Program-made: the position numbers and the translations under genes
Shown here: one piece after another, positions 32,813 through 52,862 of the stretch
How the letters are laid out: the number at the start of each line of letters is the position of its first letter
How positions within the stretch are numbered: the first letter of the stretch is position 1
Assembly: GCF_000143415.4 (NCBI RefSeq)
Contig: NW_003314332.1
Coordinates: forward strand, 682,001-746,000
Direction of reading: 5' to 3'
Source: Selaginella moellendorffii
Lineage: Eukaryota; Plantae; Lycopodiophyta
Length of the DNA: 64,000 bases
Notes under the pieces: model-generated
What the model was told of the DNA's origin: nothing
What the model saw: the letters and a program-made list of their open reading frames with translations, nothing else
The model's database searches: none

Positions 32813-35764
32813 TCATCCAATTTGCCTCTTCCATTTCCTCGAAGTCATGTATGCCACAATGTCCATGTACGCTGCATTGTTCTTGTCCCTCATGCCCGTG
32901 TCAAAGTTATAGCGGATGAGCAGCCGAACAATTCTTTGGTTCCCACATCGCGCTGCAATGTCCATTGCAGTTTCTCCCGATGTTCCGGCGTTGGGCCTCG
33001 CACCCGCCCTCAGTAGCAGTTCCACCATCTCACTGTCCTGACTAGCAACTGCTTGCAACAGTGGTGTTGACACTTGATCATGGTGATACTCTAGCCCGTC
33101 CAGCACAACACCACCTTCACTTATAAGGAGTTCCACCATGGCCTTTTCCCCTTTGAAAGCACACGCGGCCATGAGAGATTGTCCCAAGTCTGCCCACTCC
33201 TCCTTGGAAGAAAGCTCATGTATCAGCTTCCTCAGCTTTTCCAACACCCCTCCCTCGGTATCAATTACCTGGTTAAGGTCCAAACTGGCGATCACGTCCG
33301 TGTAATCCTCCTCGTAACGGAGGAGGCTATGCAGCTTGTCAAAAACGAGATGAACGTCACCCTTCTCAATTGCTTCCTCAAGCTCCCCCGTCTGGTAGGC
33401 GCTAGTACTGCTTTCATCCTTTCTCTCGTCATCGGTGTCGTGTGGGAGTTTCCCCATCTCTGTCAAGACGGCTAGCACTTCAGCATTCTGCCGGGCGGCT
33501 CGCGCAAGGCAGGCAAAGGACCAGCCGTCAAAGTCGAGCACCCCGGCTGCGTACTCAACCATTTCCCTGCTTCCATTTGCCCCCAGGCTCCTCCACAACC
33601 TGTCTTCAACGCGATCATGTCGGGCTGGATCCTTCCAATGCGAGATGAGGAGTTGGAAGACTGACCAGTCCCCATCTCTCGAGCATGCATGGCTGAAAGG
33701 CTCCACTCCATACATCTTACATGCCTCCACAAAAATCCTAAGAAGTGGCAGAAAAGCCCGGTGTTGGGGCTCGATATGATGCCTGTGTCGAAACAGCTGC
33801 GCCACCTTTGCTGTAGAACTAGTTATCCCATCATTGGAAGCTGCATCAATCACGAAAACGTCCAGCTCCAGAAACGCTGTCATCACGGCTAAGCTCCAGA
33901 AGTCCATGGCATGGTAAAACAACTCTCTCAAAAAATGCGGGTCATTCGCATGTGTCGTTCCCAGAGTCCCCCCTCTTTCAAGCAGGAACATGACCGCTCC
34001 CACCTTGTCACCTTCGATGGCATACGAAAGTGGAGTATGGAACTCGTTAACCAGCGCTACATTGACGTAGTCGGGCTGCTGCACATAGTCAAGCAGGATT
34101 CTCATCAGTTTGGTGTTGCCTTGATGCGCCATTCTGTGCAGCGGTTTCAGGTTGCTGCTCGGGTGCCATGTATCGTAGTCCATTCCTAAATCGTAGAGAA
34201 GATAGGACAGTACCTCGTCACTTTGGCCATCGCATGCTTCGTGCAGTAGCCACTCTTCCTGCACAACGATGTCTCTCCATTTGCTGGCCAGGAAGCGCAG
34301 CACAGCTGGACTCCCTGGCCGGGCGCAGATGCTGCACAGTCGGGAAACATCCCTTTCAGGGTTGAAACTCCAAGTGACCCCCGCTCTGTCCATGATATAC
34401 TCGACGCCCATTTTGAAATCAATCTTGCAAAAGAGATGTAGCAGCGTGTTCCCGTCAATGTCCACCACCATGTTCTTGCTTGGCTGCTCAACGAAAGCGT
34501 CCAGAACGTTAGGGAACCTTGTCCTGAGACGGTTGAGCATGTCCCTGTACTCTGGCGACGAAACGAATGCAAGATCATCGTTGTTGTTGTTGTTGCAGCT
34601 GTCGCATCGGACGACATTCCATAGCTTATCATAAGCAGCGTGTGCATGTTCCAGGCACTGCTCCAGGGAGAATCTATTTGTACGGTCCTGGCAGCAGCCG
34701 TCAACCATGGCAAAGAGCTCGTCAAAAACTGGCTCGATCACAGGCTGTTTCAAGCCTGGTGGAATTTCAAGAGTCACTGGACAGCCTGGGAATCTCTTGT
34801 TGTCAATAATTTCCTTGATCTCATCACGCTTCTCAGGGCCATCAGGGATGAAACCATCCCAGGACATCTCGATCCATAGCATGCCCAAGGAGTATACATC
34901 TGATGGGAAAGGATTGTCCACAATGAGCTTAAAGCCTTCTGGATCATCCAGCGCATCTGAAACCTCAGGCGATATCCAGAACAGCGACCCGCCCAGCGAG
35001 TTGAGGTAGTCAACGTCTCTCACCCTGAAGCTGAATCCAAAGTCTACGAGCTTGGGCGTGCAGAAGCTGTCCAAAAGCACGTTTCTACCTTTGAGATCTC
35101 CGTGGTAAACGCCATTTCGATGGCAAGTCTTTACTCCCACCACCACCTCCATGAAGATTTCCAGCTTTGTCTTCCACCAAGATGGAAGCTCTTCCAAGCC
35201 CGGACCCCGAGACTTAAGAAACCTGCTAAGATCACCGTGCGGGCCTTCCACGAGCTCCATGACGATGCAGACGCCATTGAGATCGCTGTTGCGGGTAACC
35301 CCATAGACATGCACCACATTCCTGGTTCCTTGTAGCACCCTTACATTGCAGGCCTCCCTCAAGACTTCCACAACCTCATCCAGTTCAACTTCGCCAGTGT
35401 CGATTTTCTTAACAGCGACTGTTATCATTTTCTCGCTGTGGTCGCCTTTCAAAATGGACCTTGACGGCGTTTGGTGCCTCTTTGCGTTAACCCAAGGCCC
35501 TCTGCTAAGCTCAAACCTCTCTCCATGGCTCTCCATCAGCGTACCTTTAAAGATTTTTCCAAAGTTTCCGCCATCGATGCTCCCTACAGAATCCAGCTTT
35601 AGAGTGTCCAGCAGATATGTCTCTGCGCGTCTGTACAAGTCAACAGCTACTGCTGGATCCCTTAGATCTTCCCAAGCCTTCATAGCGGCTTCATACCGCG
35701 ATATCAAGTACTCCGAATCTGAAACAGATGACTCCAGCTCAAATTTTGATGTTAAGGAGGCCAT
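32813..35764 (-). CDS. Intronless TKL-type protein kinase with C-terminal ankyrin repeats
   Basis: GGNFGKIF, VAVKK, HGDLKGRNVLL, DFG, WISPE, SDVYSLG; ankyrin motifs GNTLLH, KPLHRMA, TPLSYAI, TPLLQAV, TAMDIAA. Confidence 0.9.
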   Translation of the reverse strand: MASLTSKFELESSVSDSEYLISRYEAAMKAWEDLRDPAVAVDLYRRAETYLLDTLKLDSVGSIDGGNFGKIFKGTLMESHGERFELSRGPWVNAKRHQTPSRSILKGDHSEKMITVAVKKIDTGEVELDEVVEVLREACNVRVLQGTRNVVHVYGVTRNSDLNGVCIVMELVEGPHGDLSRFLKSRGPGLEELPSWWKTKLEIFMEVVVGVKTCHRNGVYHGDLKGRNVLLDSFCTPKLVDFGFSFRVRDVDYLNSLGGSLFWISPEVSDALDDPEGFKLIVDNPFPSDVYSLGMLWIEMSWDGFIPDGPEKRDEIKEIIDNKRFPGCPVTLEIPPGLKQPVIEPVFDELFAMVDGCCQDRTNRFSLEQCLEHAHAAYDKLWNVVRCDSCNNNNNDDLAFVSSPEYRDMLNRLRTRFPNVLDAFVEQPSKNMVVDIDGNTLLHLFCKIDFKMGVEYIMDRAGVTWSFNPERDVSRLCSICARPGSPAVLRFLASKWRDIVVQEEWLLHEACDGQSDEVLSYLLYDLGMDYDTWHPSSNLKPLHRMAHQGNTKLMRILLDYVQQPDYVNVALVNEFHTPLSYAIEGDKVGAVMFLLERGGTLGTTHANDPHFLRELFYHAMDFWSLAVMTAFLELDVFVIDAASNDGITSSTAKVAQLFRHRHHIEPQHRAFLPLLRIFVEACKMYGVEPFSHACSRDGDWSVFQLLISHWKDPARHDRVEDRLWRSLGANGSREMVEYAAGVLDFDGWSFACLARAARQNAEVLAVLTEMGKLPHDTDDERKDESSTSAYQTGELEEAIEKGDVHLVFDKLHSLLRYEEDYTDVIASLDLNQVIDTEGGVLEKLRKLIHELSSKEEWADLGQSLMAACAFKGEKAMVELLISEGGVVLDGLEYHHDQVSTPLLQAVASQDSEMVELLLRAGARPNAGTSGETAMDIAARCGNQRIVRLLIRYNFDTGMRDKNNAAYMDIVAYMTSRKWKRQIG

Positions 35765-51515: not shown

Positions 51516-52862
51516 ATGGCGACTGAGGGCTTGGTCGCCGCAGGGGCTAGTGCAGCATTGGGAGCTCTTCGAGGAGATCTTCGAGGAACAGCCGACCTTC
51601 TGATCAAGCTTGCTTGTGCTGCTCGCAACAGCATAGGCAGATGCCAGGCGATGGCAGACAAGGTGAACATGGTTACCACCGCCCTCGAGAGCAGATCATA
51701 CAGGTACGACGATGTCAACCTTCAGGCTAATCTAGAAAAGCTGCTAGTTGTGATGAAAGACTGCGTGTGTCTTGTCGAGAAACACAGCAAGACGAGTGCG
51801 GTGAGCTTCTTCTTCTCGTGCCACGCTCTCACTGTTGACGAATTTGACGACCTCGACGCGCGCCTCAATCGCTGCATCAGCTGCTTGAATCTGAACTTCC
51901 ACATCTCCTCGTATGATTGCAGTCATGAGCACAAAGACGAGATCATAGCCCATATACAGGCCAACACAGCACGAACAGCACGAACTATTGAGGAGATAAA
52001 GCAGCTGGTCAAGGGCCAGGAGCCCGTAGAATATTTGACAGCCGTGCAGGGCGTTGTGACCGTGGGTGAAGCCTTGGCCGGGGACTACATGATATCTGCG
52101 ACGCTCACCGACAACAGCTCCTCAGTGTCACGGAAAGTCATCCTAGTGCAGTCACACGAGACAAAGAAGGAAGTTGCGATCCTGGAGAAACTAAGCCTTC
52201 ACGAGTGCATACTTGAGTTTCTTGGCATCTTTCCATATGGTGAGTCCAAGCCTTATCTTGTCTTTGAGAGGCCCTCCGAGGAAATGACAACATTGGACGA
52301 ACTGATCAATAAGAACCCGGGGAGTTTTATGAGTGACTGGAGAGTAAAGAGACAGATCGCTCTGGAGCTGGCAAGAGGTATGAGAGACTCTCATCTGGCC
52401 GGTGTGGTCCACAAGAATTTCCGCAGCTCCAACATATTTCTTAGCGGTGACCTTCAGCACGCTAAGATCTTTGGCTTCTACCAGGGAAGGATCAAGCTGG
52501 AGCCAAGTGCCAAGAAGTGGATGAACGACGAGCAAGTCCGCTGGGCTGCACCTGAGCAAGTTCAGAGACACCGACCTGCCTTTGATGAAAAGTGTGACAT
52601 CTACTCACTGGGAGTGGTGATTTGGGAGCTCATCACTGGGAACTTTCCTTTCGCCAAATACACTAACTACCGAAAACTTACCAGAGATCGGGACGAAAAT
52701 GTTGCCCTCTTGGATGACTTCCCTGTGGAATGCAAAGCAGGTGAACTGGGCAAGTTCAGCAGAATCTCTGAGCTCTGTAGAGATCCTCTGCCTGATAACA
52801 GACCATCTCTCGAGAACATTATCAATGATCTCCACAAGCTCCTTCCCGAAGAGATGATTTGA
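51516..52862 (+). CDS. MLKL-like protein: N-terminal four-helix bundle + pseudokinase, copy B, intact
   Basis: Helical N-terminus (AARNSIGRCQAMADKV...LEKLLVVMKDCVCLVEKH...FDDLDARLNRC); kinase fold with no GxGxxG, HKNFRSSNIFL for HRD, FGF for DFG, retained WAAPE and DIYSLGVVIWEL. Confidence 0.8.
   Translation: MATEGLVAAGASAALGALRGDLRGTADLLIKLACAARNSIGRCQAMADKVNMVTTALESRSYRYDDVNLQANLEKLLVVMKDCVCLVEKHSKTSAVSFFFSCHALTVDEFDDLDARLNRCISCLNLNFHISSYDCSHEHKDEIIAHIQANTARTARTIEEIKQLVKGQEPVEYLTAVQGVVTVGEALAGDYMISATLTDNSSSVSRKVILVQSHETKKEVAILEKLSLHECILEFLGIFPYGESKPYLVFERPSEEMTTLDELINKNPGSFMSDWRVKRQIALELARGMRDSHLAGVVHKNFRSSNIFLSGDLQHAKIFGFYQGRIKLEPSAKKWMNDEQVRWAAPEQVQRHRPAFDEKCDIYSLGVVIWELITGNFPFAKYTNYRKLTRDRDENVALLDDFPVECKAGELGKFSRISELCRDPLPDNRPSLENIINDLHKLLPEEMI

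Follow-up and report, generated by a model that had tools for sequence, protein, structure and literature searches.

A kinase-ankyrin gene beside an MLKL-like gene in Selaginella moellendorffii and other seed-free plants: a candidate kinase-to-MLKL pair

Introduction

Executioners of the MLKL type in animals are switched on by the kinase RIPK3. To our knowledge, the genes for RIPK3 and MLKL are not adjacent in animals, and we know neither of an action of the kinase-ankyrin protein RIPK4 on MLKL nor of an upstream kinase for MLKL in seed plants. Here we describe a locus of the lycophyte Selaginella moellendorffii, lying in a 64,000-nucleotide stretch of contig NW_003314332.1 (positions 682,001 to 746,000 of the forward strand; hereafter the window), which holds a gene for a protein kinase with ankyrin repeats, denoted k, and a gene for an MLKL-like pseudokinase, denoted m (Table 1). 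Homologues of the two genes are also neighbours in the liverwort Riccia sorocarpa and in the peat moss Sphagnum jensenii, and k and m form a conserved module of two genes that is probably functional.

Published work on plant MLKLs concerns seed plants, or pairs of MLKL genes with NLR (nucleotide-binding leucine-rich repeat) genes in grasses. The MLKLs known from across the seed plants, such as AtMLKL1-3, have a serine-rich extension at the C terminus, and no partner kinase has been described for them (10.1101/681015). Wheat Pm13 is an MLKL-type resistance component (PMC10951266), and wheat R3NLR/R3AK is a linked NLR-MLKL receptor pair in which the four-helix bundle (4HB) is required for cell death and whose pairing is confined to the Poales (10.64898/2026.08.07.743466). 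In fungi, the HeLo and HeLo-like helical-bundle membrane-targeting domains are related to the 4HB of MLKL (PMC10952240). Proteins of an 'MLKL' class have been catalogued, without analysis, in all plant lineages tested (PMC11218826). No description of a kinase-ankyrin/MLKL gene pair was found in full-text literature searches, in agreement with a first-pass annotation of the window, which knew of no report of a linked pair of this type in seed-free plants.

The m family can be recognised as homologous to MLKL by plain sequence profiles, over both domains, and lies beside one active-type kinase gene from liverwort to lycophyte. The pair is a concrete candidate for a kinase-to-MLKL switch outside animals, and is relevant to the question of an ancient or a convergent origin of necroptosis-like killing.

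MLKL homology of gene m

In the protein encoded by m, residues ~1-130 form a four-helix bundle, ~142-170 a brace helix and ~180-450 a pseudokinase domain. The window copy by itself matches Pfam Pkinase (1.3e-22) and, under the 27-bit cut-off, MLKL_N (0.0064, 16.4 bits); MLKL_N is matched by all 12 aligned members of the m family (best 1.2e-11). When a profile of the m family (A1) was compared with 177,635 Protein Data Bank (PDB) sequences using HMMER, the best match was full-length mouse MLKL, 4btf (E 9.2e-32), in a single alignment of profile positions 26-443 to chain positions 16-460 that extends from the bundle through the end of the kinase fold. The next match was a second MLKL structure, 6lk5 (E 2.2e-29). 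A profile restricted to the N-terminal region (A3) found seven MLKL 4HB sequences in the PDB at 5e-8 to 5e-7, with the next match at 0.054.

Structure prediction is consistent with this. The AlphaFold2 model of m (predicted local distance difference test score, pLDDT, 70.9; predicted template modelling score, pTM, 0.76) has helices at residues 2-39, 45-64, 71-97 and 108-128 and the brace at 142-170, followed by a kinase fold. In Foldseek searches 4btf was the sole full-length match to the complete model (467 columns), and the human MLKL executioner domains came top by probability for the N-terminal model, 2msv superposing with a root-mean-square deviation of 2.8 A over 117 columns. The profiles, Pfam and Foldseek together identify m as a homologue of MLKL over both domains, in collinear order, and bear out the first-pass description of this plus-strand gene as MLKL-like, with a 4HB and a pseudokinase.

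The kinase domain of m has lost its catalytic residues. Across the 12 family members the catalytic loop reads H[R/K][N/K/S], with the Asp replaced (by N in nine of them; the mouse MLKL loop is HRN), DFG has become FGF, and the beta3 lysine is not evident (VILV). With the catalytic Asp, the DFG Asp and the beta3 Lys all lost family-wide, m is by its motifs a pseudokinase throughout its family, as had been claimed. Invariant columns are concentrated in residues 215-450 of m; the N-terminal alignment has only five. The activation segment is conserved in length, at 31 residues, and contains one invariant serine (S336). S336 aligns to residue 352 of the 4btf chain, which corresponds to mouse S347 if a five-residue tag offset holds, although alignments of this loop are unreliable. 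Mouse MLKL S345/S347 is a known RIPK3 target cluster (site numbers from 10.64898/2026.06.10.731390).

Several features of m are thus shared with the vertebrate RIPK3-MLKL system, namely the 4HB-brace-pseudokinase order with sequence homology in both domains, the HRN-type dead catalytic loop and, as far as an unreliable loop alignment allows, an activation-segment serine at the RIPK3 target cluster; the partner of m is also, by its motifs, an active-type protein kinase. Like m, seed-plant MLKLs and wheat Pm13 combine a kinase or pseudokinase with an executioner-type helical bundle at the N terminus; those proteins act in immunity. In contrast to the seed-plant proteins, as these have been described, the m family is found in seed-free plants, aligns directly to animal MLKL and lacks the C-terminal serine-rich extension, m and its relatives stopping ~10-20 residues after the kinase fold (~10 in m). 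At the wheat R3NLR/R3AK locus, too, the linked genes are proposed to code for an executor of the MLKL type and, next to it, for the component that acts upstream. That component is an NLR, however, and the active site of a kinase is present in R3AK; the pair described here has a kinase-ankyrin protein in place of the NLR, and m is a dead kinase. The fungal HeLo and HeLo-like domains differ in being activated by amyloid templating or NLR oligomerisation, and have neither a pseudokinase fusion nor a kinase-ankyrin partner gene.

The kinase-ankyrin gene k

The k protein matches Pfam Pkinase (2.7e-27, residues 105-374), Ank_2 (3.1e-25) and Ank (residues 864-959), and seven stretches of the k profile, within the C-terminal 550 residues, match Ankyrin-1. 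In 11 members of the k family VAVK, the alphaC Glu, HGDLKGxN, DFG and (A/S)PE are invariant, the catalytic residues of k itself being K119, H221-G-D223, D241-F-G and P266-E267. These motifs fit an active, non-RD kinase, and the earlier account of k as an intact-motif kinase with ankyrin repeats stands, the repeats being C-terminal. An origin of k and m by tandem duplication of one kinase gene was rejected, with the two kinase domains only 27% identical over 116 residues and no k-family member among the best 150 matches of m.

Selaginella has several paralogs of k, further homologues were found in Pteridium, Sphagnum species, Ceratodon and Riccia, and no protein more than 43% identical to k was found in a collection of 5.8 billion proteins. 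The k tree matches the species groups, apart from duplications specific to Selaginella, and therefore indicates a single ancestral k gene. Full-length k is unannotated in the public record, where only a model of a 105-residue kinase fragment is present (8759-9073 of the reference scaffold, L001). Two further k paralogs lie in tandem, 3 kb apart, on Selaginella scaffold GL377729 (L002 10081-13044 and 16071-19029); the second is annotated only as a 339-residue kinase and is recovered by tblastn in two pieces, which may reflect a frameshift.

Phyletic range and linkage of the two families

An exhaustive HMMER search recovered full-length relatives of m, at 34-40% identity, from the fern Pteridium, the liverwort R. 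sorocarpa, the lycophyte Diphasiastrum and Sphagnum-type sequences, together with one Selaginella paralog. Beyond these, the only matches were between kinase domains of m and unrelated multidomain proteins. The six full-length sequences (P0101, P0102, P0103, P0105, P0107 and the allele of m itself, P0001) were traced either to seed-free plants or to Logan and metagenome entries, and no seed plant was among the sources traced. A word-indexed search with profile A1 gave only two proteins and no added species, its candidate list being filled by generic kinases. Taken together, our searches brought up members of the two families in a liverwort, mosses, lycophytes and a fern only, with scores falling steeply outside each family. 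Pteridium expresses both.

A check of related genomes for repeated linkage was positive, k and m being adjacent in R. sorocarpa and Sphagnum jensenii. In Riccia, R1sor_023912 and R1sor_023913 are consecutive k and m homologues on the same strand, ~5.4 kb apart. In S. jensenii a full m gene is convergent with k at a distance of 4.6 kb. The gene that is convergent with k in Sphagnum fallax, and on two metagenome scaffolds that match it, contains only the bundle, without the pseudokinase (Table 1); by its sequence, this gene may be either a remnant or a free-standing bundle gene. By tblastx, k and m are the only sequence common to the Selaginella, Riccia and Sphagnum loci, and no third conserved gene was found.

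Coupling of the two genes is argued from this adjacency in three deep land-plant lineages and in three orientations, from the same restricted range of both families, and from a shared promoter in Selaginella that is rich in W-boxes (see below). A divergent pair with a short shared promoter and recurrent linkage is also what is seen in plant paired immune genes, although the k-m pair has no NLR member.

Two of the compared loci share another neighbour. A tRNA_bind (PF01588) gene occurs near both the Riccia k-m pair (L004 18268-20829) and the Selaginella k paralog P0048 (L003 22260-23048), and could either reflect wider ancient synteny or be a coincidence. At the locus of the Selaginella m paralog XP_024534395 (L006 10001-11669), a gene with an aegerolysin domain lies 3.4 kb upstream (6189-6611), and a weak m-like fragment (7852-8325) lies between the two.

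The two Selaginella haplotypes

The window is recognisable as S. moellendorffii from its 453-residue plus-strand open reading frame (ORF), 97-98% identical to SELMODRAFT_428198. Reference scaffold GL377664.1 (L001) is collinear with window positions 26188-35767 and 51486-61622 at 96-98% identity, and the window therefore looks like an alternative haplotype. On L001, which has neither the transposon block nor the duplication described below, k occupies 6611-9565 of the minus strand and is head-to-head with the only m, an intact gene at 10001-11338 of the plus strand, with 433 bp between their start codons. This clean pair is present in the L001 haplotype only.

In the window, comparison of the sequence with itself and with L001 gives the order a (minus strand), k (minus strand), transposon block, native intergenic region, m', a' (minus strand), a 311-bp filler and m. 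Gene a, of the PICOT/GRXS17 type, marks one end of a duplicated unit; a' and m' are partial copies of a and m. The damage to m' consists of a frameshift near residue 132, a deletion of residues 252-355 and the loss of everything beyond residue 404; the public annotation SELMODRAFT_425067 (P0100, 170 residues; window 48606-49330) is a spliced model placed on this pseudogene. At the m'/a' junction the counterpart of position 52711 meets that of 30456. A tandem duplication of the unit formed by a, k and the 5' part of m, with loss of k and the promoter from the second unit afterwards, would be expected to leave such a junction. Such a history is our inference from the junction. The first-pass annotation had stated that removal of the transposon leaves k and m divergent across ~400 bp. 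This is right for the ancestral arrangement, as preserved on L001, but in the window the gene 410 bp from k is the broken m', and the intact m is found a further 2.9 kb away, beyond a' and the filler. The same annotation was correct that both genes are intronless among intron-rich neighbours, k and m being single-exon and the glutaredoxin neighbour split.

The transposon block had also been recognised before, at 35750-48195. It is real, and the transposon-free haplotype L001 places it at 35768-48195. It substitutes for 18 bp of reference sequence, and its ends have common termini (35770-35958 and 48081-48195). By the comparison with L001, in the window haplotype these 12.4 kb separate k from the shared promoter. 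The nested Gypsy element has long terminal repeats (LTRs) of 1147 bp that are 99% identical, which indicates that its insertion was recent. Just past its 3' LTR, and within the block, lies an array of ~9 units of a 68-bp tandem repeat (46704-47328; 77-88% identity between shifted copies).

A rival reading is that the window carries a decaying or silenced copy, in which transposon insertion and partial duplication have uncoupled the genes and left no module function at this locus, whatever the ancestral state. The block starts 3 bp upstream of the k start codon, the native promoter has been left with the dead m', and the intact m retains only ~30 bp of native upstream sequence. The ratio of non-synonymous to synonymous substitution (dN/dS) between haplotypes is 0.42 for k and 0.66 for m, compared with 0.27 for the glutaredoxin neighbour (values that are descriptive only, with 8-55 substitutions per gene or domain), and the bundle of m has seven non-synonymous changes to one synonymous, again small counts. 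However, the k and m ORFs are intact in both haplotypes, the nested insertion is recent, and the other haplotype has an intact pair, so that decay would concern one allele rather than the module. On balance we regard decay of this copy as distinctly unlikely. The intact and the disrupted haplotype offer a natural comparison for allele-specific expression.

The k-m intergenic region

W-boxes are binding sites of WRKY factors, and the first-pass annotation had counted four of them between k and m. The 410-bp native intergenic region of the window has exactly four (TTGACY) where 0.43 would be expected (P=0.0005), an approximately tenfold enrichment, and the 433-bp region of L001 has five (~0.4 expected). 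Only 0.6% of tiles across the 64-kb window have four W-boxes, and these are the tiles over the k-m intergenic region. Most of the W-boxes lie inside a repeated AAGTCAACTGATCC-type motif. The shared, W-box-rich divergent promoter therefore suggests that k and m may be co-induced by WRKY factors in Selaginella. The two haplotypes also differ by a 161-bp inversion within this region (window 48358-48518, L001 9753-9913).

Proposed activation of m by k

Tentatively, we favour the explanation that k and m are a coupled module in which the kinase activates the MLKL-like executioner, as RIPK3 activates MLKL. In such a module k would engage m and phosphorylate its activation segment, where the family-invariant Ser336, in an [E/K/N]-[P/K]-S-x-K-[K/R] motif, is the candidate acceptor. 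Phosphorylation would free the four-helix bundle, which could then oligomerise and act on membranes, with cell death or ion flux as the defence output. What the sequences show is the domain architectures, the state of the catalytic motifs, the homology of m to animal MLKL, the adjacency, the matching range and the W-box enrichment; physical interaction, phosphorylation, membrane activity or cytotoxicity, a role in immunity and any sensing by the ankyrin repeats are inferred, phosphorylation and sensing as in the first-pass annotation.

Several observations weigh against this reading. The window copy of m is on a long branch and falls under the Pfam threshold for MLKL_N by itself, and Foldseek gave no significant E-value for the bundle on its own (at least 0.16), as is usual for short helical bundles; sequence profiles were therefore relied on. 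The earlier assignment of k to the TKL kinases is not supported, as the best PDB matches of its residues 49-388 are the STE20 and CAMK kinases TNIK, MAP4K4 and AMPK (~1e-13). The likeness to RIPK4/ANKK1 proposed at the same time remains in the order of an N-terminal kinase and C-terminal ankyrin repeats, but does not extend to sequence. The 60 best PDB matches to the kinase domain of k include no RIPK, and the tetrad of the RIP homotypic interaction motif (RHIM), [IV]Q[IVLC]G, was not found in the 11 k-family and 12 m-family sequences. The resemblance is therefore architectural only. Compared with the vertebrate system, k is thus not a RIPK, having no RHIM, no specific affinity of its kinase domain and a large ankyrin array. 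The W-box enrichment is owed partly to a single repeated short motif, and the promoters of homologues are mixed: Riccia m and the Selaginella k paralog P0046 have four W-boxes per 500 bp of upstream sequence, and there are only zero or one upstream of the other homologues, including those of Sphagnum, Diphasiastrum and Ceratodon. Finally, seed-plant MLKLs and wheat R3AK function with no upstream kinase known for them, or together with an NLR (10.1101/681015; 10.64898/2026.08.07.743466).

Linkage of k and m is, moreover, not universal. In Selaginella itself, the k paralogs (L002, L003) and the m paralog (L006) are unlinked within the flanks read, no k was found within 42 kb of the tandem m pair of Diphasiastrum, and no m within 10 kb either side of the Ceratodon k. 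In Ceratodon purpureus, k (L007 10001-13574) lies instead 1.3 kb upstream of a TIR-NB-ARC-LRR gene (14856-19046) of the same orientation. The genes called within 10 kb of the pairs in Selaginella, Riccia and Sphagnum include no NB-ARC gene. Together with the orientation of the pair, which differs in each lineage (divergent in Selaginella, same strand in Riccia, convergent in Sphagnum), these cases could mean that adjacency is inherited or coincidental and that the genes act in separate pathways, for example m with NLRs, in the manner of wheat R3NLR/R3AK, and k with other partners. We consider such independence rather improbable. The Selaginella, Riccia and Sphagnum lineages separated early in land-plant history, and k and m are the sole sequences that their loci have in common. 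Both families are small, and chance adjacency within 10 kb on chromosomes of 18-51 Mb is therefore very unlikely. In the searches run here both also have the same range, in seed-free plants only.

The adjacency kept across three deep lineages would also fit a coupled pair in which the pseudokinase of m serves k as an allosteric regulator, a scaffold or a decoy/guardee, with the output passing through k and its ankyrin platform rather than through membrane damage by the bundle. Pseudokinase-kinase pairs and plant decoy pseudokinases provide precedents. The far better conservation of the pseudokinase domain than of the four-helix bundle points the same way, as does the disease resistance conferred by Arabidopsis MLKL, which is reported to be separable from cell death (10.1101/681015). 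However, the MLKL_N bundle is kept in every full-length member of the m family, and the linked S. fallax remnant retains exactly the bundle, which argues that the bundle is a functional part and not baggage. A regulatory or decoy role for m in place of membrane damage therefore seems unlikely to us, and activation of m by k is retained as the favoured explanation.

A more far-reaching possibility, which we put forward as doubtful, is that early land plants had a dedicated two-gene cell-death cassette, one gene coding for an activator of the kinase-ankyrin type and the other for an MLKL that is an orthologue of the executioner in animal necroptosis; these genes would have stayed neighbours in liverworts, mosses and lycophytes and been lost in seed plants. 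If this is true, MLKL killing triggered by a kinase would predate the plant-animal split or have spread by ancient transfer of an intronless cassette, and k would be the first candidate upstream kinase for any plant MLKL.

Other features of the locus

The positions of the features discussed above are collected in Table 1.

Table 1. Features of the k-m locus, in window positions, with the Sphagnum bundle-only genes in positions of their own locus sequences (L010-L012)
Feature	Position	Strand	Basis
a: thioredoxin + three-glutaredoxin (PICOT/GRXS17-type) gene, parent copy	30456..32543	-	Pfam, three Glutaredoxin domains; Thioredoxin and Glutaredoxin annotated in L001; self-BLAST
k: intact gene of one exon; 983-aa protein kinase of active type, with ankyrin repeats	32813..35764	-	uninterrupted ORF; kinase aa ~60-400, ankyrin aa ~430-983
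Nested LTR-retrotransposon block	35768..48195	.	collinearity with L001 lost at 35767, regained at 48196
Copia-type reverse transcriptase/RNase H remnant, outer element	36002..36880	-	Pfam RVT_2, 2e-07
Ty3/Gypsy LTR retrotransposon nested in the block	39112..46637	+	LTRs 39112-40256 and 45491-46637, 99% identical, self-BLAST; Gag, protease, reverse transcriptase, RNase H and integrase domains
Native k-m intergenic region (bidirectional promoter), 410 bp, now joined only to m'	48196..48605	.	homology to L001 9586-10000, including a 161-bp inversion
m': truncated, frameshifted pseudogene copy of the MLKL-like gene	48606..49477	+	self-BLAST, 48576-49332 vs 51486-52255 at 96%, and 49332-49477 vs 52566-52711; tblastn pieces
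a': partial copy of the PICOT-type glutaredoxin gene, one Grx domain short	49481..51175	-	self-BLAST, 30456-31391 vs 49481-50402 at 97%, and 31780-32543 vs 50392-51175 at 91%; Pfam, two vs three Glutaredoxin domains
Filler, 311 bp, standing where the second duplication unit would have k and the native promoter	51176..51485	.	no match elsewhere in the window or L001
m: intact single-exon MLKL-like gene, 448 aa	51516..52862	+	ORF; ATG 51516 likely start, mechanical ORF 51501-52862 begins at TTG 51501
Bundle-only gene beside k, S. fallax and two matching metagenome scaffolds	L010 16876-17247; L011 16840-17211; L012 8433-8804	- (L010)	first 126 m residues

Elsewhere in the window, a pair of direct repeats of ~1 kb, 94% identical (4830-5874 and 13155-14178), flanks a stretch with an AT-rich segment (6001-10000, 32% GC). 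This is probably another LTR retrotransposon, unrelated to the k-m pair.

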